64,000 bases of DNA, taken from positions 682,001 through 746,000 of the forward strand of contig OZ218961.1 in NCBI GenBank assembly GCA_965112735.1, read 5' to 3'. The notes below the pieces were generated by a model, which was not told where the DNA came from, did no database searches, and was given only the letters and a program-made list of their open reading frames with translations. Positions 3,864-64,000 of this stretch are shown here, piece after piece. The stretch is from Phaeosaccion multiseriatum. Its lineage: Eukaryota; Protista; Ochrophyta, other classes. A program made the translations under genes and the position numbers. How positions within the stretch are numbered: the first letter of the stretch is position 1; each line of letters opens with the position of its first letter.

Positions 3864-5204
3864 TTACTCCCTCTCCTTCTCAAAGTGAATGTAGGCATGC
3901 ACGTAATCCATCGCATGGTGCATCGGATCCGCCGCAATCCTCCCCTCATACCTCCCATAGAGCTCATCCACCAACGCGGCCCTCTCCTCCGGCGACCTCT
4001 TGTTCGCATCCAGCGCCGACAAGAAGGTGCTGTTAGACCACGATCGCACCGTCAGAACCACCGACAAGGGGGTTCCCTTGCCTCGACCAAAGGGGCATAT
4101 CTGCTTCCTCCACTCGAGCTTCTTTACACGAAGCCCGGGCACGGTCGAGCCCGGCGTGGCAGCACTGCCGCTGCTTCCCTCAAAGGGTGCAAGCAGCTCC
4201 GCCTCGTCCCTGTAGTAATTGACGAAGGAAGCCTCCTCGTACTCCTTCTGTGTGATGCGTCCCTCCTTCTTCATCTCCATCCAACACGAGTTGAGTTCCC
4301 CAAACATGTTGGCGAAACCCTCTTCCCCATTCCAGCCCAGGTAGTGCCCCTCCGGATCCTTGGCCAGTGTCGAAATCACCATCTGACCCCCCGGTTTCAG
4401 CTCGGCCGCCCGATGGGTCAAAATCTCCTTCCAATCCTTCGCCGCCTGCGCCGCGTACTGCTCCTGCGCGGCCAAGTTTCCAGTGCCAGTGTGGTGGACG
4501 TGGTCGAGGATAGTGCAAGGGAGCTCACTCATCCAGTGCAAGGCAGTGTAGGACATGGCCAAGTCCACGGATCCGCGAGGGAAGCACTGCTCAAAGAAGC
4601 TGCGTCCGACGGCGTGGTAGTAGATCCCAGGGGTGGAGGTCAGAGGAGGGCACTCTACGGGAACTTGTTCAGTGCCGTTGGCGAGGTAGAAGAGGGATTT
4701 GAAGTCGTTGTTCGGCTGGTCTTCGAACCCAACCTTTTGTCGGGCGTGCGTAGAGGAGAGGGGAGTGAGTGACAGGAGAGGGAAGGAGGGGAGGAGGGGA
4801 AGGGGAAGGGGAGAGGAGAGAGAGGGGGAGGGGGAGAGGGTCGATAGGAGAGGAAGGAGGGAGGGAAGGGGGAGAGGGGAGGGAGGGCGGTCAGTCGGGT
4901 TGTTGTGGAGAAGGGCGAAAGATGAGGGTGGAGCGAGGGGGTGTCTCTCTTTGTTCCTCTCCCTCCCTCTCCCGTATCCCCACCCACTCTCTAGCCCCCC
5001 CCCCCCCCTCCCTCTCTCTCCCTCCCTCCTCCCTCCTCTCCCCTTCGCTCTCTCTCACCTCAAGGTCGCACCCCTCGGGGATGATGCCCCTGACGTGATT
5101 GACCATGGGCATGAGTGGGCCTCCGTCAGCGCTACCGAAGTCGGCAATGCGTACCGTGTTGGTCGAGTCCTGTGGGTGGGAGAGACCAAGAGAGACAGAG
5201 AGAG

Positions 5205-5242
<38 letters not shown>

Positions 5243-5680
5243 AGTGAGAGAGAGGGAGAGTGTGAGGGATAGGGAGGAGAGAGGCATATACAGATACGCT
5301 TGAGCAACACAACATCAGGGGAACAGCCGATATGCTTCCCGGGAACACACTCCTCACCCTCGTCTTGGGGAGGCCGATGGAGAGAGAGGCAGACACACGC
5401 ACACGCACACGCACGCACACATACATAGACGAGATATAAGAGCTGGGAAAGAAAGAGAGAGAGAGACACACACGCACGCACACTTCACCAACACCACACA
5501 ACCCTCCCCTCCCCTCCCCTCCCACACTGCTCACCTTGGGAAGGCGAAGCGCGCGAATGGAATCTTCAATCATATCCTTCGCCTTCATCACCACATCAAA
5601 GCAACCCAGCGTGATCTTGCTGTACGTGGCGGCTCCTTCGTCTCCATAGGGGACGTGGGCCCTGCCGTAGGCAACGTCGT
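3864..5680 (-). other. Domain 3: SABATH / SAM-dependent carboxyl- or N-methyltransferase (Methyltransf_7)
   Basis: Motifs RIADFGSADG, FEDQPNNDFKSLF, GRSFFEQCFPRGSVDLAMSYTALHWMS, DW..IL..RAAELKPGGQMV and C-terminal MDYVHAY. Confidence 0.88.
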
Positions 5681-7350
5681 GGCTGCCGCTGCTGTTGAGG
5701 AGGAGGCCTGGTCGGGTGATGGCCATACGGGAAACGTCGAAGGAAGGCTCCTGCCCGAGGGTCTGGTGTGGGGGGAGGAGGGGGAGGAGGGGGAGGAGGA
5801 GGGGGGGCGGATAGGAGGAGGAGGAGGAGGAGGAGGAGGAGGAGGAGGGTCAATAGTCGTGGAAATGAAGTAGCTCACTCACCCACCCACCCACCCACCC
5901 ACTCGCGTGCTCGCGCACTCCCTCACCCCCCCCCCCCCCCCGTCAGCTTCCTTCCAAATCCACAGCCATCTCTCTCCATCCACTGCCATCCTTCCCTCTG
6001 TGTATCACCAACTCACTCACCAGATCGGCCAAGGCCTTGCCCAGCATGGGGGCAAACTTGAATGCACGTCCGTTGCCAGCTGTGAAGATGGATACATTGG
6101 GGTGGTCCGGCAGAGTGTCCAGCACAAACATGGCGTCCTTCGTCATGGCGTAGGGGGAGGACATCATGTCCACCTGGGGATATAAAGCGTTACGTAAGCG
6201 TGACGTAACGGTAAAATAAGGGTTGGGTTTGGTACGGGTGACGTAGTGGTTAGATAAGGGCTGGTTTGCAGGCGTCCCCTTCGTCATTGCGGGAGAGGAC
6301 ACCTATGTCCACCGGGGGACACCTATGTCCACCGCGGGACACCCATGTCCACCGGGAAGGGGGCTAGGTACGTAAGGTAATTACGTAAGGGGAGGGTAGG
6401 AGGAGGAGGACTTGGGCTTACGTAAGGGATAGATAAGGGTCACGTAAAGGTTTTAGCCCGGAGGGTTCGACTTGCTTACCTCCTCGGTGTAGAGGTCGCC
6501 CCACTGCTTGGCCAAGAAATCCGACATTTGCTTCTGCACGCCCGAGTCCGCTTCGTACTCAAAGCTGTCCATCGTCTCATAGTGGTTCCTCTCCGGCGAG
6601 AAGTCGGCGCCAACCTTGCCGACGACTGTTGTATCACCAACGTCTGCACTCCGCCCCAGCGCGGCACTACTCGGGCTGCTCTTCTTGTCAACAGGGAAGC
6701 CGTAGAAGAGGGCGTCATCTTTGCCGAAGTGGAACCATTGGGAGGGTTTGGCGCCATCTTTGAGTCCGTAGTGTCCCCAGTGCACACCCCAGACCTGTAG
6801 CAGTTGGAGGGCACAGCATAGCAGATGTTGGGTACAGCAGTTGGTGATACGGACACAGCAGTTGGCGGTGCAGCGCAGCACGTTCCATTTTTGAGGAAGT
6901 TGAGAGATGAGGGGGCGAGAGTAGAGGAGCCGTGACGACCGAGAAGAGCACGCACACACACACGCACACACACACACACACACACACCTCCACCTCCACC
7001 CACCAAGCCACCCTCACCCACTCTCCATCCACCAATTGACATGCTACACCCACCCATGGACTCACTACATCCACCCACTGACTTACTGCCTACCCACTGA
7101 CTTACTCCCCACGCACCTGCATGTCCAATTTGAGGTCGAAGTGTGCAAGGAGGTCGTTGCCCCATGCCCCGGGGCAGAGCACGAGCTTCTCTGCTGTGAA
7201 GTTCTGCCCATCCGACGTCGTCACGTGGTATCTGTGAGTCAGTCAGCGGGTGAGTGAGGGAGTGAGTGAGTGAGTGAGTGGGTGAGTGAGTGGGTGAGTG
7301 AGTGGTGAGTGGGTGAGTGAGTGAGTGAATGAGTGAATGAGTGAGTGAGT

Positions 7351-7384
<34 letters not shown>

Positions 7385-10300
7385 CAGCGAGTCAGACAAG
7401 TACAATGAGAAAGAAGAGAAGTGGGAGGGGAGTGGGTTGGGTGGCCTCTGCATCCCCTCCCACTGCACTGACACAAAACTCTTGCCTAACTCAGCCCGAT
7501 ATCGACACCCATTTTAATTTAATGTGTTCGATATTGTTTTGATGACGAGACTCTTTCACTGACTTACCCTGTGTCACCATCCCCCTGCCAGATGTCCACC
7601 ACCTTTGTGCTGACCTCCAAGTCCCAATTGCCGCCCTTCTGCGCCTCTGACATCATCGACTCGCATGCAAGGGACGAGTTCACAGACCCTGGGAGGGAGG
7701 GGAGGGATGGCAGTCCATGGGGACGGACGGCAGCGGACCGGACGGGTGGACGGCGCCGGACAGGAAGAGGGAGGGAAGGAGGAGGATTGGTTGGATGGTT
7801 AGTGCAAACGTTTCAACTACTTCACATAAATCACGCATCCGCAAAGCACAAACGCATTCACTACATTCAATCGCTCCCACCCCCCACCCCCCATTGACTA
7901 ACTACGCCCACCCACCCACCCATTCCCCATTGACTTAGGTACATCCACACACCTGCCGTCTCTTCGTAGAGTCCAATGTGCTTGGGCTCGGGCTTCATGG
8001 GCGGGAAACGCTCCGCCATCTGTGACGGGTTGTCGAAGAACTGATGCGGTATCTTGCGCTTTTGCATCACATCCAGGGCCCCCGGGATGCTTCCCTCTAC
8101 CGTCTCGCCCGTGTCTGCCTCTCCGTAAAAGAGGAGACCATTCACGTCGAGCAGCGTGGTAGCAGACTCCTCCTCCAGCTCCTTCCACAGACTCAGCGAC
8201 TTGGTCTGAAGGTCGCTAAAGTAAGGATCCGAGTACATTTGCCGAAACATTCGGCTTGTCCCGTACGAACTGCCCCCCTTGTGTGCCACCTCCTCCCCAG
8301 CCTCTAGCACCACCCCGGCTACTTGAGGGGCGAGCTTGGACAGTTGGTACGCCGCAGCCGTTCCCGCCATGCCTGCACCGATCACCACCACATCCTTCCT
8401 CACCGCGCTCTCCTCGGCCCATCGCTCCATCCTGGATCCAATCACCCCCTTATTGACGGGTTCACTGCCCCTGCTGCTGCTCTTGTTTCGCATGGTAATG
8501 GTGCCTCCGCTGCTCTTGCTCCCACTCCCCGAGGCGGAGGTGCTTCCCACTCGACTCGCTCCTGCACTGCGAAAGTTTGCGCTGGCGGGACTGACGATGC
8601 TCTTTTTGGTTGCCTGACAGGCCTTACTCGGCCTACTTGCCCTACTACTACTACTGCTGCTGCTGCTCATCGCGCCGCTGCTGCTATTGTTAGCCCTGAC
8701 TGTGTGGTTCTCATTGCTGCTGTTGTTGCTGCTGTATCCTCCTCTGCCTGCAGTGCCCACCGAGGCGACGGAGTCGGCCATGTGGTCCACACATCTGTTC
8801 TTGACGGGGGTGTCGGCAACAAGGGCCAGATAGTCTCCCACCTGAGCAGCAGGAGGAGGAGGATGGTGATGAGGAGGAGGAGGAGGATGGTGATGAGGAG
8901 GAGGAGGAGGAGGAGGAGGAGGAGGAGGAGAACGAGGAGGAGGAGGAGGAGAACGAGGAGAACGAGGAGGAGGAGGAGGAGGAGGAGGAGGAGGAGGAGG
9001 AGGAGAACGAGGAGGAGGAAGAGGAGAAAGACATGAGGGAAGGAGTGTTCCTACAAGCACCAGTTTTGCATCCGTCCGACCCTCCTCCACTCATACACTG
9101 CCATCCAGTCCCATCCAACCTCCTTCCTTCTCCGGCCCTCCCTCCTCCTCCTCCTCCTCCTCCTCCTCCTTAGCCTCCTCCTCCTCCTCCTCCTCCTCCT
9201 CCCCCTCCTCCTCCTCCCCCTCCTCCTCCTCCTCATCCTCATCCTCCTCCCCCACCCCGCCCTTACTCTCTCTCCCCCTCCTCCCCACCTACCTTGGCGC
9301 TGATCTGATCGATGATGAAGGCGTATGCCCTCGAGGGCCTGAGTGATTGGTACTCGTCACTGTTCCACTCCAGAGAGTCGATGATGATGGCACCGGCACT
9401 CGCCACGTGGTCGGGCACAATGATGATGCCTGTTTCATTTGTTTGAGCAATTGTGTTTCATTTGTTTGAATAATTGTGTGTCATGTGTTTGAGCAATCGG
9501 TCGGTGTGTTTCATTTGTTTGAGCAATTGTGTTGTGATTTGTGTAGGATTGACCGGCGGATAGATTGGTGTAATATGGAGGAGGAGGAGGAGGAGGAGGA
9601 GGAGGAGGAGGAGGAGGAGGAGGAGGAGGAGGAGGAGGAGGAGGAGGAAAGGGGGGGGGGAGGCAGGGAGAGGTCCGGCAGTAGTTCGTCACAAACGCTG
9701 CAAGGTCAAACAGCCCAGTGTTGAAGTCAATTAGAGGAGGCATCACTCATACGGCAGCAACAGGACTCACTCAGTAAGTCAGGCAGAAGGAAGCCTTTGG
9801 TACGTAAGTCAGTAAAGTAAAATATTCCTTCCTCACCTTTGGCAGAGGCGGCCACTCTATCCGCATCAAACTGAAACGGCACATTGGCGGCCCCGGCAAT
9901 GGCCTTGCAGCGCATTTCTGTAACGACATCTTTGGTAATCACTCCGGCGGCACCGTTGGGAGAGAAGATATCAACGTCCAGACTCTCCCAATTGGTGCCA
10001 CTGACGTTTGTGCAGCCGGGTACGTCGGCTTTGCTTGGGATGATGTCACTAGTGTACACGGTGGCGCCGTAGTCGACAAGGCGGTTAGCGAGGTCGCTGC
10101 CGACGTTGCCGGTACCCTGGGGGGGGGAAGGAGGGAGGGAGGGAGGGAAAGAGGGGGAGAGAGCGACGGGGAGCGGAGGGAGCGAGGGAGGGAGCGAAGG
10201 GGCGGGGAGGGAGGAGAAGGGGATGATGAGAACGAAGTATAATGACAATTATGATTCTCTCCGCCTTGCCTCGTACTACAGTATCCACACGCAGCACACA

Positions 10301-11809
10301 GATACACACACAAACGCACTCACACACACACGCACCTGCACGTGAACCCTGAAGGTCCTGGGCAGGCCCAAATGTTCCGCGGTGCGCACCACAGCGGCGA
10401 AGGCTCCGGCGGCGGTGGCGACGTTAGTGTCGATTGGAGAGCCGATGCCTGCGAGGACATAGGGAGACATGTCATCGAGAGCCACCATGTCCTGAGGGAG
10501 TTGGTGATACAGAGGGAGGGGGAGGGGGGGGGGGGGGGCAAGAGAGGGGAGGGGAGTGGAGGGTTGGAAATGGGAGAGGCGGGTTGGTGTAGGTAAGATT
10601 ACATGAAGAGAAGGGGTGGGATGGGGAAAGTGCGTGAGGAGGTATGCGCAGGAAGGTGTCGGTGGCTGCACTGAGAGAGAAAGAGAGAGAGATACACCCC
10701 CCAGAAGGAGCTGAGGAGGAGGAGGAGGAGTGGAGGGCATGGCTGCGCTGGCTGGAGGAGCGGCTACAGAGAAACGGTGGGGCTGCTGATGCGATGTGGT
10801 GAGAGAGGGACGAGATGGCGGTATATGGTGCTCTGGGGCCTTGGTGCAATACACGTAATACACAAAAGACATGTTCCTTCGATAGTCACGTGGCAGGCAG
10901 CCTCGACGCTGCCGCTGAAGCGCTCTCCCGTCTAACTCTATCCCTCCCTTCCTCCATCTACACCCCTGCCATACGCATCCATATATATATATATATCTTC
11001 CTCCCATCCCATTCCTTTCCCGCACCAACCTTGTGGGTGGTGTTCATGTCACACCCCGTATAAACGGAGCCCTTCATTGCTCCCAGCGAGTCGGCCACCT
11101 CCTTCATCAAGGTGTCTTTGCACAAATCAGGGATAGCTACGTCGCTATCAAACACGAGCTTGGCCCCTGTAAAGCCGGTGTTGTACATTCCGTGTTTGGC
11201 GGACATGGCCTCAGTCAGGGCCACGGCTTCGTCCTGGGCGGCATCGGGGGAGTCGTAGGTGCCGATGCGCAGGCCACCGTTACCAGGTAGCTCGGGAGTG
11301 GCACCGGAGTCAAAGCCCATGTACAGTGTGCCCTCGGAGAGTTTTTGCTCGCGTACGTGGGTGTGGTCGTTGATGCGGTTAATCGTGGCGGCGGCCCCTA
11401 CCGACCCTGCGCCCGCCACCTCCTTGCTGCTGTAGCTGCTGCTCTCGATCGTGCCGGCAGCCGTGCTGTGGTGCTTGAGGTGCTTGCTGGTGGCGGTGGT
11501 GGCTCGGTTGGTGCTGGGGATTTTGAAGGCCGTGGACGATTGCGATCGTCGACCCGGCACCTGTGCGGCCTTCCGCTGCTGTTGACGGACCTTCTGGTGC
11601 ATGCGCTGCTCCTCACAAGCGCGGGAGAGAGTGACCGTGGACAGAGTACTTCGGCATCTCCTGCTGCCGCGGCCGACGGACGCAGCACCGGAGATAGTGC
11701 AACCGCTGACACTTCGTGTGGCCACGGCGGGTAAGTTTCCTCCAGACGCCAAAGCTGCCGCCACGGCCCGCCTCGTGCCCCCCTTCGCACCTGACCCGAC
11801 TCGCATCAT
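3864..11809 (-). CDS. Trifunctional fusion: amino-acid dehydrogenase (Glu/Leu/Phe/Val DH family) + NikD/sarcosine-oxidase-like FAD oxidase + SABATH methyltransferase, ~1384 aa, 12 exons
   Basis: Exons (minus strand): 11809-11030, 10491-10336, 10116-9837, 9429-9293, 8841-7953, 7688-7568, 7231-7117, 6794-6480, 6173-6021, 5762-5535, 5169-5059, 4733-3864. All introns are GT-AG, the phases are compatible, and the total is 4155 nt with a single stop at 3864-3866. The start ATG at 11809 is the first in-frame Met and is inferred. Confidence 0.85.
5720..8405 (-). other. Domain 2: FAD-dependent amine oxidase, MSOX/PIPOX/NikD family
   Basis: Motifs DVVVIGAGMAGTAAAYQL (FAD-binding GxGxxG), GGSSYGTSRMFR, VLCPGAW, WFHF...LFYGFP, and FVLDTLP...AGNGRAFKFAPMLGKALADL...FDVSRM. 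Confidence 0.85.
9293..11340 (-). other. Domain 1: NAD(P)-dependent amino-acid dehydrogenase (LeuDH/PheDH-like)
   Basis: Motifs GNGGLRI...EAMSAKH...GFTGAKLV (cf. GG.R...MTYK...GGGK), YTGCDMNT (cf. TAEDVGT), Rossmann VQGTGNVG, IAGAANVP and GIIIVPDHVASAGAII. Confidence 0.85.
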
Positions 11810-12159: not shown

Positions 12160-13420
12160 CTACAGCGGCGAGAGAAGGAGGGGAGAACGAGGAAGAGGAG
12201 AAGGGATGGAGACAAGAGGGCACGGCAAGAGAACGAGGGCAGACAAGAGGACACAACAGAGAACGAGGGAAGAGAAGATTACACAGCAGATAACAGACAG
12301 AAGAGGACAGCAGAGAACGAGGCCAGAGAGGAGCAGGACACGGCAGAGAACGAGCGAGGGCAGAGAAGAGGACACAACAGAGAAAGAGGGAAGAGGAGAT
12401 TACACAGCAGATAACGAGGGCAGATAGGAAAACACAGCAGAGAACGAGGGCAGAGAAGAGGGCGCAGCAGCTGAGAAAGAGGGCAGAGAAGAGGACACAG
12501 CAGAGAACGAGGGCAGAGAAAAATAATGAGGGAGAGAAGAGGACACAGCAGAGAACACAGCAGGGAACGAGGGAAGAGAGATCACACAGCAGATAACGAG
12601 GGCAGAGAAGAGGACACAGCAGAGACCGAGGACAGAGAAGAGGACACACCAGAGAACGAGGGCAGATACGAGGAACACACAGCAGAGAACGAGGGCGAGA
12701 AGAGGGCACAGCAGGGAACGAGGGAAGAGAGATCACACAGCAGATAACGAGGGCAGAGAAGAGGGCACAACAGAGAAAGAGGGAAGAGGAGATTACACAG
12801 CAGATAACGAGGGCAGATAGGAAAACACAGCAGAGAACGAGGGCAGAGAAGAGGGCGCAGCAGCTGAGAAAGAGGGCAGAGAAGAGGACACAGCAGATAA
12901 CAGAGAGAAGAAGAAAACAGAGAACGAGGCCAGAGAGGAGCAGGACACGGCAGAGAACGAGCGAGGGCAGAGAAGAGGACACAGTAGATAACGGGGGTTA
13001 GAAGAGGAGAGGAGAGAAGGAGGGGGAGAAAGGGGAGAAGAGGGAAAGGAGGGAAGGAGGGAAGAGAGATCACACAGCAGAGAAAAGGAGGGAGAGGAGA
13101 GGGCACAACATAGAAAGAAGGAAGAGGAGATTACAAATTATTACAAAGATTACACAGCAGATAACGAGGGCAGATAGGAAAACACAGCAGAACGAGGGCA
13201 GAGAAGAGGGCGCAGCAGCTGAGAAAGAGGGCAGAGAAGAGGACACAGCAGAGAACGAGGGCAGAGAAGAGGACACAGCAGAGACCGAGGACAAGAAGAG
13301 GACACAGCAGAGAACGAGGGCAGAGAAAAGGGCACAACAGATAACGAGGGCAGAGAAGAGGAGACAGCAGAGAACGAGGGCGAGAAGAGGACACAGACTG
13401 GAGTCGAGAAGACATAGCAG
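12160..13420. repeat. GA-rich complex minisatellite (~30-bp core GAGGGCAGAGAAGAGGACACAGCAGAGAAC) with higher-order duplicated blocks
   Basis: The core unit recurs dozens of times. The block containing GATTACACAGCAGATAACGAGGGCAGATAGGAAAACACAGCAG...GCGCAGCAGCTGAGAAAG recurs near 12400, 12790 and 13150. Confidence 0.85.
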
Positions 13421-60300: not shown

Positions 60301-62228
60301 CCCATCACTCAGCTCGGAAAGTGATAAGGTGTCTCCTTCTCATCCCCTTCCTCCTCCTCCTCCTCCTCCTCCTCCTCCTCCTCCTCCTCCTCCTCCTCCT
60401 CCTCCTCTTCCTCCTCTTCCTCCTCCTCCTCCTCCTCCTCCTCCTCCTCATCCTCCTCCTCCTCCTCCTCATCCTCCTCCTCCTCCTCCTCCTCCTCCCC
60501 CTCCCCCTCCCCCTTCTCCCTCTGCTGCTGCTCCTCCTCAGGGTCAACTGCAGCTGGTGCGGCATGGCAAGATGCACGGGTGGGTGCGGATGTACTGGGC
60601 TAAAAAGATCTTGGAATGGACGCCCTCACCCGCGGAGGCGCTCCGAATAGGGCTCCTGCTAAACGACAAGTATGTAGGTGGGGGGGGGGCTTGGGATGGA
60701 CAGGGTGAGGGCAGAGGGAGAGAGGGGAAGAGACAGAGACAGAGGCGGGGGCTGGAGAGAGAGAGAGGCCCGTGAACTTAGATACTTGCGCTTTGAACCC
60801 TTTTTTCTGTAACACTCTCTCTCTCTCTCTCTCTCTCGCTCCCTCTCTCTCTCTTCCCCTCTCTTTTGTCTGCGTTCGCTTGGAAAGGTACTCACTGGAC
60901 GGTCAGGACCCGAACGGCTTCACTGGGCTTGGGTGGTCCATAATGGGCATCCACGACATGGGGTGGACACCGCGACCCATCTTTGGCAAGATCCGTTACA
61001 TGAACTACAAGAGCACAAAGACCAAGTTCGACATTCACGCCTATGTCAACAAATTCCCAGGGGCGGCAGACAAGGCTACCGCAGCAGGGGGTACACCGGC
61101 CAGACCGAAGGGAGAGAGGAAGAGCAAGGGGAAGGGAGGGAAGAAGGAGGCAGGGAAAGGGGGCGGCAAGGGAGGGAGTAAGGGGAATACTGCAGAGGAG
61201 GTGTTGGGCCTGAGGAAGCAGCTGGACAAGGCGATTGATGCAAAGGTATGTATGTATGTATGAATGCGATTTGTGTCATCTTACGTATGTAGGTATGTCA
61301 TCTTATGTGTTTGTTTTCCTACGGTGTAGAGAGGAGGGAGAGGGAGTGAGGCAAGGAGGGGGAAGCATGGGAGAGAGGGTGGCGGGTAGAGGGAGGGTGT
61401 ATGTGTGTGCGTATGTGTGCGTCTTTGTGGACAAGGGGCTTTATTGACTCGCGCCTTCCCTCCCTCCCTCCCCATCTCCCTCCCTACCTCCCTTCCTCCC
61501 TCCCTTTCTCCCTATTTCCCTCCCTCCCTCCCTCTCTATCTCTCTCCTCAGGACATGGGCCGCGTGGGTGACATCGTGTCCGCCCTGGGGAATGTTGGCA
61601 TGACCTTCGACCTGCTTAAGGCAACAAAGATCGGCCTCAGTGTCAACAAGGTATGTGTTATGTAAGGAATACGGAAGGGTACGTAAGGTGTACATATTTG
61701 GGACTATCGTCAGCAAATGCATATTCTCCATAAGGAACGCAGTGCTCGTTATCCTCTTGCCTCAACAGTATCTTCTTCTTCTTCTTCTTCTTCTTCTCCC
61801 CGTCCTCATTCTCCACTCACCCTGCACCTTGTCAATCAATCTATCATGTCAGGTGAAGAAGCTGGCGACCGGGGAGGTGAAAGCTCTCGCCAAGGACCTC
61901 ATTAAGAAGTGGAAGGCCGTCGCTGAGAAGGCCGGGCAGCAAGCCAAAGTAGCCACTCCTGGGATGGCCAAGGGGGGTCCTGCTGGTGCTTCTTCTTCTT
62001 CCTCGTCGGGGGCGGGAGGAGGAGGTGGTGGTGGTGGCAACGGGGGGGGGGGGGGGAAGGAAGGGGGGGGTGATGACGACAATGCTGACATTGACGAGTC
62101 TGTTGTTGCTGGGCCGAGAATGCGGATCATTGCTAAGCTGACTGAGGTACGTGCTTCCGAGAAGAAGGAAGGGGGGGGGGGGGGTCAGGAGCGAGAGGTC
62201 TCTCTGTCTGTCTGTCTGTCTGTCTCTC

Positions 62229-62283
<55 letters not shown>

Positions 62284-62328
62284 GTCTGTCTGTCTGTCTG
62301 CCTGTCTGTCTCTCTGTCTGTCTCTCTC

Positions 62329-62375
<47 letters not shown>

Positions 62376-62406
62376 ACCTGTCTGTCTGTCTGTCTGTCTG
62401 TCTGCC

Positions 62407-62443
<37 letters not shown>

Positions 62444-62466
62444 GCCTGTCTGTCTCTCTGTCTGTC

Positions 62467-62497
<31 letters not shown>

Positions 62498-62510
62498 GTC
62501 TGTCTGTCTA

Positions 62511-62575
<65 letters not shown>

Positions 62576-62620
62576 GTCTGTCTGTCTGTCTGCCTGTCTG
62601 TCTCTCTGTCTGTCTCTCTC

Positions 62621-62679
<59 letters not shown>

Positions 62680-62762
62680 ACCTGTCTGTCTGTCTGTCTG
62701 TCTGTCTGCCTGTCTGTCTGTCTCTCTGTCTGTCTGTCTGCCTGTCTGTCTCTCTGTCTGTC

Positions 62763-62833
<71 letters not shown>

Positions 62834-62952
62834 GTCTGTCTGTCTGTCTGTCTGTCTGCCTGTCTGTCTGTCTGTCTGTCTGTCTGCCTGTCTGTCTCTC
62901 TGTCTGTCTCTGTCTGTCTGTCTGTCTCTCTCTCTGTCTGTCTGTCTGTCTA

Positions 62953-63013
<61 letters not shown>

Positions 63014-63058
63014 GTCTGTCTGTCTGTCTGCCTGTCTGTCTCTCTGTCTGTCTCTCTC

Positions 63059-63141
<83 letters not shown>

Positions 63142-63144
63142 GCC

Positions 63145-63177
<33 letters not shown>

Positions 63178-63200
63178 GCCTGTCTGTCTCTCTGTCTGTC

Positions 63201-63263
<63 letters not shown>

Positions 63264-63390
63264 GTCTGTCTATCTGTCTGTCTATCTGTCTGTCTGTCTG
63301 TCTGTCTGCCTGTCTGTTTGTCTACCTGTCTGTCTACCTGTCTGTCTCTCTGTCTGTCTGTCTGTCTCTCTGTCTGTCTGTCTGTCTGTG

Positions 63391-63429
<39 letters not shown>

Positions 63430-63506
63430 GTTTTCTCTCTGTCTGTCTGTCTCTCTCTCTGTCTGTCTGTCTGCCTGTCTGTCTGTCTGTCTCTCTCTCT
63501 GTCTGC

Positions 63507-63538
<32 letters not shown>

Positions 63539-63880
63539 GACTCTCTGTCTCTCTGTCTGTCTGTCTCTCTGTCTGTCTGTCTGGTAAAAATAATCTTTAT
63601 CCTCTGGTGGGTGGGGTGGGGGTGGCGCTTTTCGTATCATTTGTCTTGTGCAATTTTTATTCATATTCATGAAACTTACACAACACAACAGGCCCTGAAG
63701 GAGGGCGACAACTCGGAAACGGCCAGGCGTCTGTCCACTGCCATCGAGCTGCTGATGCACAAGACCTTCCAACAGGAGCCCCAGGGGGGTGGGGATAAGG
63801 CTTACAATGACAAGGCGCGCTCTCTGCTCTTTAACCTGAGGAAGAATGAGGTCCTCAGAAACCATGTGCTGGAGAGCAAG
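57319..63880 (+). CDS. Class II CPD photolyase fused to TFIIS N-terminal and central domains (continues beyond the window)
   Basis: Exons 57319-57721, 58047-58161, 58517-58802, 59192-59689, 59918-60115, 60542-60669, 60888-61245, 61552-61650, 61853-62146 and 63692-63880 are all GT-AG and phase-compatible. Photolyase II motifs: [40 protein letters not shown]....[76 protein letters not shown] motifs: [16 protein letters not shown]...[14 protein letters not shown] and [23 protein letters not shown]. Confidence 0.88.
62198..63582. repeat. (TCTG)n microsatellite, ~1.4 kb, intronic
   Basis: Fills the intron 62147-63691. Confidence 0.95.
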
Positions 63881-64000
63881 GTAGGGAGTTGGTGATACAG
63901 AGAGAGAGTGTGTGTGAGGGGAGGGAGGGAGGGAGGAAGGAAGGGAGGGGGTGGAGAGGGAGGGGGAGAGAGAGAATGGGAGGGAGAGGGACAGGGGACA

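Follow-up and report, generated by a model that had tools for sequence, protein, structure and literature searches.

In the nikkomycin pathway of Streptomyces tendae, the aminotransferase NikC and the oxidase NikD take L-lysine through piperideine-2-carboxylate to picolinate, which then goes to a peptide synthetase. We describe here a gene whose product may carry out the same chemistry and extend it. The gene lies on the minus strand, from 11809 to 3864, of a 64,000-nt stretch of Phaeosaccion multiseriatum DNA (contig OZ218961.1, positions 682,001 to 746,000; hereafter the window), and joins a dehydrogenase of the ELFV family, an oxidase of the DAO family and a methyltransferase of the SABATH family, together called the trio. 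The proposed pathway departs from the NikC/NikD route in two ways: a nicotinamide adenine dinucleotide (NAD)-dependent ELFV dehydrogenase replaces the aminotransferase, and a methylation is added, the picolinate presumably being N-methylated rather than passed to a peptide synthetase.

Homarine (N-methylpicolinate) is among the most abundant small nitrogen metabolites of the surface ocean, where it acts as an osmolyte and an infochemical. A culture survey reported it from two Synechococcus strains, WH7803 and WH8102, reaching 400 mM inside cells of the latter, as well as from four of six diatoms and a single Emiliania huxleyi strain, and it can make up to 3% of particulate carbon; the text of the same study makes no mention of it for the cultures of Prochlorococcus, Crocosphaera, dinoflagellates, Micromonas and Ostreococcus, and states that no biosynthetic pathway for homarine has been characterised (Heal et al. 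2021, PMC8269262). Homarine is also described as an osmolyte in the green flagellate Platymonas, in the account that PMC3721227 gives of Dickson and Kirst 1986. Its methyl group has been described as derived from S-adenosylmethionine (SAM) (PMC9321204), and a bacterial pathway for its breakdown was published in 2026 (PMC13236597).

The best-supported reading of the Phaeosaccion gene, which we consider probable, is that one polypeptide holds a three-step route from L-lysine by way of piperideine-2-carboxylate and picolinate to homarine, a compatible solute. In the first step, an NAD-dependent dehydrogenase of the PheDH/LeuDH clade, its pocket repurposed by Asn177 and Asp423, would oxidatively remove the alpha-amino group of lysine, and the resulting 2-oxo-6-aminohexanoate would cyclise spontaneously to delta1-piperideine-2-carboxylate. 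Judging from active-site conservation, a relative of NikD that binds flavin adenine dinucleotide (FAD) non-covalently would then aromatise this compound to picolinate in a four-electron reaction with O2. From its context, the SABATH methyltransferase would transfer a methyl group from SAM to the ring nitrogen, giving homarine. Each of the three enzymes is a new subfamily within a known family. The three domains are fused in this gene, and the same three enzymes are linked in bacteria and in other algae, in bacteria together with a BCCT-family transporter.

Three enzyme domains in a 12-exon gene

The gene was rebuilt from open-frame segments and splice sites as an open structure of 12 exons. 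All 11 introns are GT...AG, 219-538 nt long and compatible in phase, and the spliced coding sequence is 4155 nt (1384 codons), with a terminal TAA as its sole stop. An earlier note made from the letters of the window had proposed 12 compatible exons encoding three domains with no stop, and had placed both fusion junctions inside single exons; the rebuilt gene and its coordinates agree on both counts. Pfam searches with separate exon pieces returned ELFV_dehydrog, DAO (twice) and Methyltransf_7. Exon 5 (8841-7953) carries, in one frame, the C-terminal helix of the dehydrogenase (8785..8841), a Ser-rich linker of 125 residues, 36 of them Ser (8410..8784), and the FAD-binding N-terminus of the oxidase with its GAGMAG motif (7953..8409). 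In exon 10 (5762-5535), the final 12 oxidase residues, up to Arg994 (5727..5762), end in TLGQEPSFDVSR, which passes directly into the methyltransferase N-terminus starting at Met995 (5535..5726). Exon 1 opens with the start codon and an N-terminal extension of ~149 residues rich in Arg, Ala, Ser and Thr (11363..11809), possibly a targeting peptide.

Full-length relatives have 0-100 residues before the dehydrogenase domain, fewer than this extension, and linkers of about 35-40 residues rather than 125, making the long linker and the extension peculiar to the Phaeosaccion gene among the relatives compared. Otherwise the gene is collinear with its full-length relatives. Compared with eight full-length three-domain proteins, the 1384-residue model aligned along its entire length, with 53-66% identity in every domain, and it retained 112 of the 113 positions that do not vary in the family alignments. 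Judged by these alignments, the model is confirmed as a real fusion and not a chance product.

The dehydrogenase belongs with the amino acid dehydrogenases of the ELFV family. Its substrate-binding half is encoded by the second part of exon 1 (11030..11362), followed by the inter-domain segment in exon 2 (10336..10491), the Rossmann fold with a GTGNVG motif in exon 3 (9837..10116) and the SAGAIIID segment in exon 4 (9293..9429). The exon 3 piece scored 30.5 bits against ELFV_dehydrog (cut-off 23.4); relatives scored 53-63 bits and also had the N-terminal domain. When the family profile was compared with the PDB, Rhodococcus PheDH (174.9 bits) and LeuDH (166 bits) ranked first, then TrpDH, with GluDH well behind. 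In common with PheDH, LeuDH and TrpDH, the trio dehydrogenase has the Rossmann fold and the equivalents of the catalytic residues Lys68 (which contacts the substrate carboxyl), Lys80 (GGxK) and Asp115 of LeuDH, here Lys205, Lys217 and Asp254, all invariant in the family.

The side-chain pocket of the trio dehydrogenase differs from that of its relatives. The classic specificity positions of the superfamily are Lys89 and Ser380 in GluDH, and Leu40 and Val294 in LeuDH. The first of these is occupied by Asn177 and the second by Asp423, both invariant in the family, in place of the hydrophobic Leu40 and Val294. With an Asp at its bottom, the pocket would fit a positively charged side chain, for instance that of lysine, and the dehydrogenase would then represent a new specificity class within the ELFV fold. 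Trio dehydrogenases are, in addition, always fused to or encoded beside the oxidase. We know of no characterised member of this subfamily.

The oxidase has the two-domain DAO fold, as recognised by Pfam and by full-length alignment to MSOX and NikD. Beyond the N-terminal part in exon 5, which includes Arg651 and a TGETVEGS insert with Glu700, it is encoded by exon 6 (7568..7688), exon 7 (7117..7231; second FAD-binding strand and CPGAWG), exon 8 (6480..6794; the catalytic domain, with WFHF, LFYGF including Tyr857, and GADF including Asp890), exon 9 (6021..6173; Ser937-Pro-Tyr939, and GNGRAFKF with Arg967 and Lys970) and the start of exon 10. An AlphaFold model had a predicted local distance difference test (pLDDT) score of 90.5 and template modelling (TM) scores of 0.87-0.90 to structures of the MSOX family; the exon 8 piece alone, searched against the PDB, gave a chance match only.

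The residues that bind the substrate carboxylate are kept: Arg651 aligns with Arg53 of NikD and Arg52 of MSOX, and Lys970 with Lys358 and Lys348, respectively. Glu700, in the TxEGS insert, is equivalent to NikD Glu101, and this insert is absent from MSOX. Asp890, in the G-x-DF motif, corresponds to NikD Asp276, where MSOX has His269. Tyr857 is the equivalent of NikD Tyr258 and is also a Tyr in MSOX (Tyr254). The AFKF motif is shared with NikD, and the alignments bear out the motifs LFYGF, GADF and AFKF, which the earlier note had named. The equivalents of Glu101, Tyr258 and Asp276, together with AFKF, are invariant across 14 diverse family members. Work of the Jorns laboratory reportedly gives these three NikD residues roles in the active site; titles of PDB entries name Tyr258Phe NikD and His269 of MSOX.

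The trio oxidase can thus be aligned with NikD over its full length (178 bits, TM 0.90), with Arg53, Glu101, Tyr258, Asp276, Lys358 and AFKF in common, but at an identity of only about 26-27% and with neither Trp355 nor Cys321 of NikD, the latter residing in an insert that the trio family does not have. With MSOX, MTOX and PIPOX it shares the fold, the FAD motifs and the equivalents of Arg52, Lys348, Tyr254 and Tyr317, whereas at His269 and the covalent Cys315 of MSOX it has Asp and Ser, and it has the TxEGS insert that MSOX does not. The context differs as well, the trio oxidase being accompanied by a methyltransferase in place of demethylation partners.

The methyltransferase is a clear member of the SABATH family, exon 12 alone scoring 83.3 bits against Methyltransf_7 (cut-off 29.8). 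After the N-terminal part in exon 10, with Tyr1029 and Cys1036, come the SAM-binding motif DFGSADGG in exon 11 (5059..5169) and the core, C-terminal cap and stop in exon 12 (3864..4733), where NNDF and TALHW (His1161-Trp1162) are retained. These correspond to the DxGxxxG, NDF and HW motifs of described SABATH enzymes (FAMT; SAMT, IAMT and LAMT; caffeine-type N-methyltransferases), to which identity is about 25-30% for those with solved structures. The closest structure is the fatty-acid O-methyltransferase of Mycobacterium marinum (158 bits), followed by LAMT, IAMT and SAMT, with the caffeine-type N-methyltransferases lower.

One feature sets the trio methyltransferases apart from these structures. 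The carboxylate of the substrate is clamped in SAMT by Gln25 and Trp151. In the trio protein the Trp of this O-methyltransferase clamp is kept (Trp1162) and the Gln is lost: where the three aligned structures (FAMT, LAMT and IAMT) have the clamp Gln, the Phaeosaccion protein has Cys1036, and family members have Cys, Ala or Ile. The loss is compatible with a different methyl-acceptor atom, though not proof of one. A precedent for N-methylation of a pyridine carboxylate within SABATH is presumably provided by the trigonelline synthases of coffee, which act on nicotinate. The trio methyltransferases form a bacterial and algal subfamily that we met only together with the dehydrogenase and the oxidase.

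The trio in other algae and in bacteria

An exhaustive HMMER search with the last exon returned numerous long proteins that end in the methyltransferase, in which Pfam recognised ELFV-DAO-Methyltransf_7 or DAO-Methyltransf_7. Among the database proteins retrieved up to that stage of the analysis, 20 had the order dehydrogenase-oxidase-methyltransferase, 49 were dehydrogenase-oxidase, five were oxidase-methyltransferase and two were methyltransferase-dehydrogenase-oxidase. The three-domain architecture read from the window was correct, and with 20 database proteins in the same order it is conserved rather than unique. Complete three-domain transcripts were found in MMETSP for Pyramimonas sp. 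CCMP2087, P. parkeae and Nephroselmis pyriformis, and in Shewanella surugensis the trio is a single intron-free open reading frame (ORF) of 1170 residues; other relatives include a Tribonema minus protein and an oxidase-methyltransferase of Porphyridium purpureum. Their database names are generic ('FAD-dependent oxidoreductase', 'N-methyl-L-tryptophan oxidase', 'sarcosine oxidase', 'SAM-dependent methyltransferase'). In a tree of the oxidase domain, rooted on a divergent haptophyte-type oxidase, the Phaeosaccion protein groups with proteins of green algae, Tribonema and Porphyridium, and the clade has full support.

Two further types of protein were noted. Four proteins of 700-865 residues, P0003 (Pterosperma sp. 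CCMP1384), P0021, P0413 and P0416, have the dehydrogenase and the methyltransferase with little or no oxidase between them, and could be splice or assembly artefacts or a genuine third architecture. A stand-alone methyltransferase of the same subfamily (P0249) is present in a transcriptome of the choanoflagellate Choanoeca flexa, and is of interest given the occurrence of homarine in many marine animals.

Linkage extends to eukaryotes in which the fusion is partial. In diatoms and some green algae the dehydrogenase is fused to the oxidase only, and a Methyltransf_7 gene immediately adjoins it in all five genomes inspected, divergently in the three diatoms (Pseudo-nitzschia multistriata, Cylindrotheca closterium and Cyclotella atomus) and Dunaliella salina, and in tandem in Pycnococcus provasolii. 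A methyltransferase profile specific to the family matched the neighbouring gene over nearly its whole length in the three diatoms and Pycnococcus, and only as short exon fragments in Dunaliella. In haptophytes (Pavlovales sp. CCMP2436 P0038, P0215, P0220 and P0405; Diacronema lutheri P0409), the same dehydrogenase is joined to a different oxidase of the DAO type, for which the NikD-like profile gives no more than about 80 bits, and the same methyltransferase is present or absent at the N-terminus depending on the protein. The haptophyte oxidase has possibly taken over the aromatising step by non-orthologous replacement; E. huxleyi, a reported homarine producer, is also a haptophyte.

Bacterial loci were collected by scanning one genome per species for two motifs specific to the oxidase family. 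The scan gave 105 loci, and the 80 of these that were listed, with a duplicate Shewanella contig, make up a set of 81 that was annotated with profile hidden Markov models of the three domains and checked with Pfam. Most of the listed loci are from marine Synechococcus (WH7803, RCC307, WH8017 and many others) and about 17 from Prochlorococcus (MIT9322, MIT9201, HNLC1, HNLC2 and others); others include Myxococcota, two Bacteroidota, one Legionellaceae genome, Streptomyces mashuensis and Shewanella. All three enzymes are encoded at 71 of the 81 loci. At 69 loci each enzyme has its own gene, the order is methyltransferase, dehydrogenase, oxidase, and the stop codon of one gene often overlaps the start of the next; the two Shewanella copies are one fused ORF. 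Of the ten incomplete loci, seven run off the end of their contig, which leaves the Streptomyces locus (L066), L077 with no dehydrogenase detected upstream, and L079 with a fragmented dehydrogenase. Ocean data contain hundreds of members of the cyanobacterial methyltransferase clusters alone.

The next gene on the same strand encodes a BCCT-family transporter at 59 of the 81 loci (421 bits to PF02028 for WH7803, L068). Within this set, the BCCT gene is directly 3' of all complete Synechococcus operons, of those of Myxococcota and of one Bacteroidota operon, and no BCCT gene follows the operon at the Prochlorococcus loci. BCCT carriers typically move quaternary-ammonium or sulfonium solutes, and with such a carrier beside the trio the operon looks like a compatible-solute operon with a betaine product. 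The layout, a short operon followed by an osmolyte carrier, resembles that of ectABC with its uptake systems and of the glycine betaine methyltransferase genes beside ProVWX in Synechococcus, whereas the enzymes of those operons are unrelated to the trio, which has also been collapsed into one polypeptide in eukaryotes. A search beside the Myxococcota and Bacteroidota operons for genes of lysine supply or other pathways returned nothing relevant.

Individual bacterial loci showed other features. Some high-light Prochlorococcus (MIT9322, MIT9201, MIT9215, HNLC1 and HNLC2; L013, L035, L057, L074 and other loci) have the three-gene operon without BCCT. The operon on a contig of a metagenome-assembled genome labelled Salipiger bermudensis (L017) nests in the Synechococcus clade, beside MIT S9503, and the contig is probably a mis-binned cyanobacterial one. 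In Streptomyces mashuensis (L066, 6235-12835), a dehydrogenase-oxidase pair lacks a SABATH gene, and next to it come genes for an AMP-binding adenylating enzyme that stands alone and for a gamma-glutamyltranspeptidase. This is the layout expected of a pair whose product is an aromatic acid, picolinate for example, destined for a secondary metabolite, and the S. mashuensis pair may feed picolinate into an uncharacterised natural product.

The fusion is thus one of several equivalent packagings of the module, alongside the operon, neighbouring genes and other domain orders, and it is better viewed as one of several ways to keep three co-dependent enzymes together. It is striking that a single pathway should come in so many forms, with an operon, a gene pair and various fusions among them. 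Since the packagings appear equivalent, domain order is probably not mechanistically important. The notion of an assembly line in which domain order equals reaction order is not supported, given that the order is not fixed: the operons and some fusions run methyltransferase-dehydrogenase-oxidase.

Homarine and competing readings

The trio was sought in algal transcriptomes and bacterial operons and its distribution compared with that of homarine producers, a comparison that the earlier note had suggested; the three genes proved to be linked, and their carriers overlap the producers. The operon is present in WH7803 (L068), the gene pair in diatoms and the full fusion in several green flagellates. 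The proposal in that note that the product is homarine gains strong support from gene context (the BCCT operon, the diatom pair and the overlap with producers), while the chemistry is a prediction. Turning a basic amino acid into an N-methylated pyridine carboxylate would call for a deamination followed by spontaneous cyclisation, a four-electron aromatisation of the NikD kind and an N-methylation, and the three enzymes correspond to these reactions. In the literature searched, which covered few subscription journals, neither genes for homarine biosynthesis nor the trio operon were described. We lean towards the view that the trio is the missing homarine pathway, leading from lysine to homarine on one polypeptide in Phaeosaccion, and that as an operon, a diatom gene pair and a haptophyte variant it could possibly account for a large share of the homarine made in the sea.

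Several observations weigh against this reading. For the oxidase, overall sequence and fold similarity fail to separate NikD from sarcosine oxidase. The family profile scored 178.2 bits to NikD and 177.7 to MSOX in hmmsearch, a single-sequence phmmer search favoured MSOX (84.6 versus 77 bits), and Foldseek with the predicted structure gave the best E-value to MSOX and the best TM-score (0.90) and root-mean-square deviation (2.1 A) to NikD. The claim that the oxidase is more like NikD than MSOX therefore holds at the residue level, where it has the Glu101 insert, Asp276 and AFKF; overall similarity is a tie. The position of NikD Trp355, which stacks on the flavin, is an invariant Arg (Arg967), and the Cys that binds FAD covalently is missing, Ser937-Pro-Tyr939 standing in place of Cys315-Met-Tyr317 of MSOX; because of these two changes, catalytic details must differ from those of NikD and MSOX. 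Lysine is assigned as the putative substrate from two residues of the pocket, placed there by alignment and by the numbering of the literature. For the methyltransferase, the nearest solved structures are all carboxyl O-methyltransferases, and N- versus O-methylation is unreadable from sequence.

Other points against it concern distribution, precursors and expression. We found no reports of homarine for the Prochlorococcus carriers, Myxococcota, Dunaliella or Shewanella. As 80 of the 105 bacterial loci are listed, no conclusion is drawn from names absent among them, and neither Synechococcus WH8102, the strongest producer known, nor the tested non-producers (Prochlorococcus MED4, NATL2A and AS9601, Micromonas pusilla and Ostreococcus lucimarinus) are covered. 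Labelling work in animals by Netherton and Gurin in 1982 reportedly pointed to other precursors, either glycine plus succinyl-CoA or quinolinate. Finally, the view that the locus gives one mRNA, which we favour, is based on the open exons and the relatives.

The substrate could be another basic amino acid, giving a different N-heterocyclic or N-methylated solute; ornithine, for example, might be converted by way of delta1-pyrroline-2-carboxylate to pyrrole-2-carboxylate and then methylated. The Asn/Asp pocket would indicate a polar or cationic side chain and not its length, two NikD residues, Trp355 and the Cys that binds FAD covalently, are not shared by the oxidase, and the module occurs in taxa without a homarine report (Myxococcota, some Prochlorococcus and Dunaliella). 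We nevertheless consider this unlikely, since the equivalents of NikD Glu101, Tyr258 and Asp276 are all invariant, an N-methylpyrrole carboxylate is not a betaine and would need no BCCT carrier, and the literature searched shows no other abundant unexplained betaine common to Synechococcus, diatoms and green flagellates.

Alternatively, lysine may be converted to picolinate as proposed and the SABATH enzyme methylate its carboxylate, yielding methyl picolinate or another derivative in place of homarine. Such an activity would be in line with the ranking of solved methyltransferases, in which the closest are all O-methyltransferases and the caffeine-type N-methyltransferases score lower, and with retention of the His-Trp of the TAxHWLS motif. 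The clamp Gln of FAMT, LAMT and IAMT is not conserved in the family, however, the BCCT gene at 59 of 81 loci suits a zwitterionic betaine more than a volatile ester, and the carrier taxa match the homarine producers (PMC8269262), making carboxyl methylation quite unlikely in our view.

A catabolic trio, in which BCCT would import an N-methylated solute, an MSOX-like oxidase demethylate it and the dehydrogenase deaminate it, would accommodate the BCCT importer adjoining the operon, the overall similarity of the oxidase to sarcosine oxidase, as near as that to NikD, and the database names 'N-methyl-L-tryptophan oxidase' and 'sarcosine oxidase'. We rejected it as very improbable: a SABATH methyltransferase that depends on SAM, and that every lineage keeps fused or next door, would have no role in it, MSOX residues His269 and Cys315 (the covalent one) are replaced, and the carriers are mostly photoautotrophs with streamlined genomes, which accumulate solutes rather than burn them. 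That the gene model is an artefact covering two or three separate transcripts, with for instance an internal start at the in-frame Met995 exactly at the oxidase/methyltransferase boundary, is hardly credible and was also rejected, as despite the unusually long, low-complexity linker and the separate methyltransferase gene of other lineages, both junctions lie in open exons, the last oxidase residues sharing exon 10 with the methyltransferase N-terminus, the nearest proteins, at 53-66% identity, come from complete transcripts that each encode all three domains in the same order, and the Shewanella trio is one uninterrupted ORF.

If the homarine reading is true, the trio would provide a gene marker with which producers could be mapped in metagenomes and metatranscriptomes, studies of homarine flux would become genetic, differences between strains would be explained, and a long-standing gap for a major ocean metabolite would be settled. 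It would also add to enzymology an L-lysine alpha-dehydrogenase of the ELFV type, a NikD-like aromatising oxidase without covalent flavin and a SABATH N-methyltransferase from outside plants.

Surroundings of the gene in the window

The fusion gene adjoins an axonemal dynein heavy chain gene, whose exons extend on the minus strand over about 16300-47500 (Dynein_C, AAA_lid_11, AAA_9, AAA_7, AAA_6 and DYH2-5-8_CC domains) and which has no evident link to it. Such a gene marks the source of the DNA as a eukaryote with flagella. Bacterial contamination was rejected as a source of the fusion gene on account of this neighbour and the 11 spliceosomal-type introns. A large minisatellite, purine-rich on the plus strand, occupies 12210-13396, ~400 bp upstream of the fusion-gene start codon; a 30-bp unit is nested in a 151-bp unit, in about 8-26 copies, and the array accounts for strong AT and GC skew at 12-14 kb. 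The introns of the fusion gene contain tri- and tetranucleotide microsatellites (AGG, CCT and GTGA units), for example at 7234-7381, 8851-9026 and 9141-9250, which together with the Ser-rich coding repeat at 8410-8784 give rise to long spurious open frames on both strands. At the far end of the window, a long open frame on the plus strand (61640-63895) encodes a TFIIS central domain at its C-terminal end.

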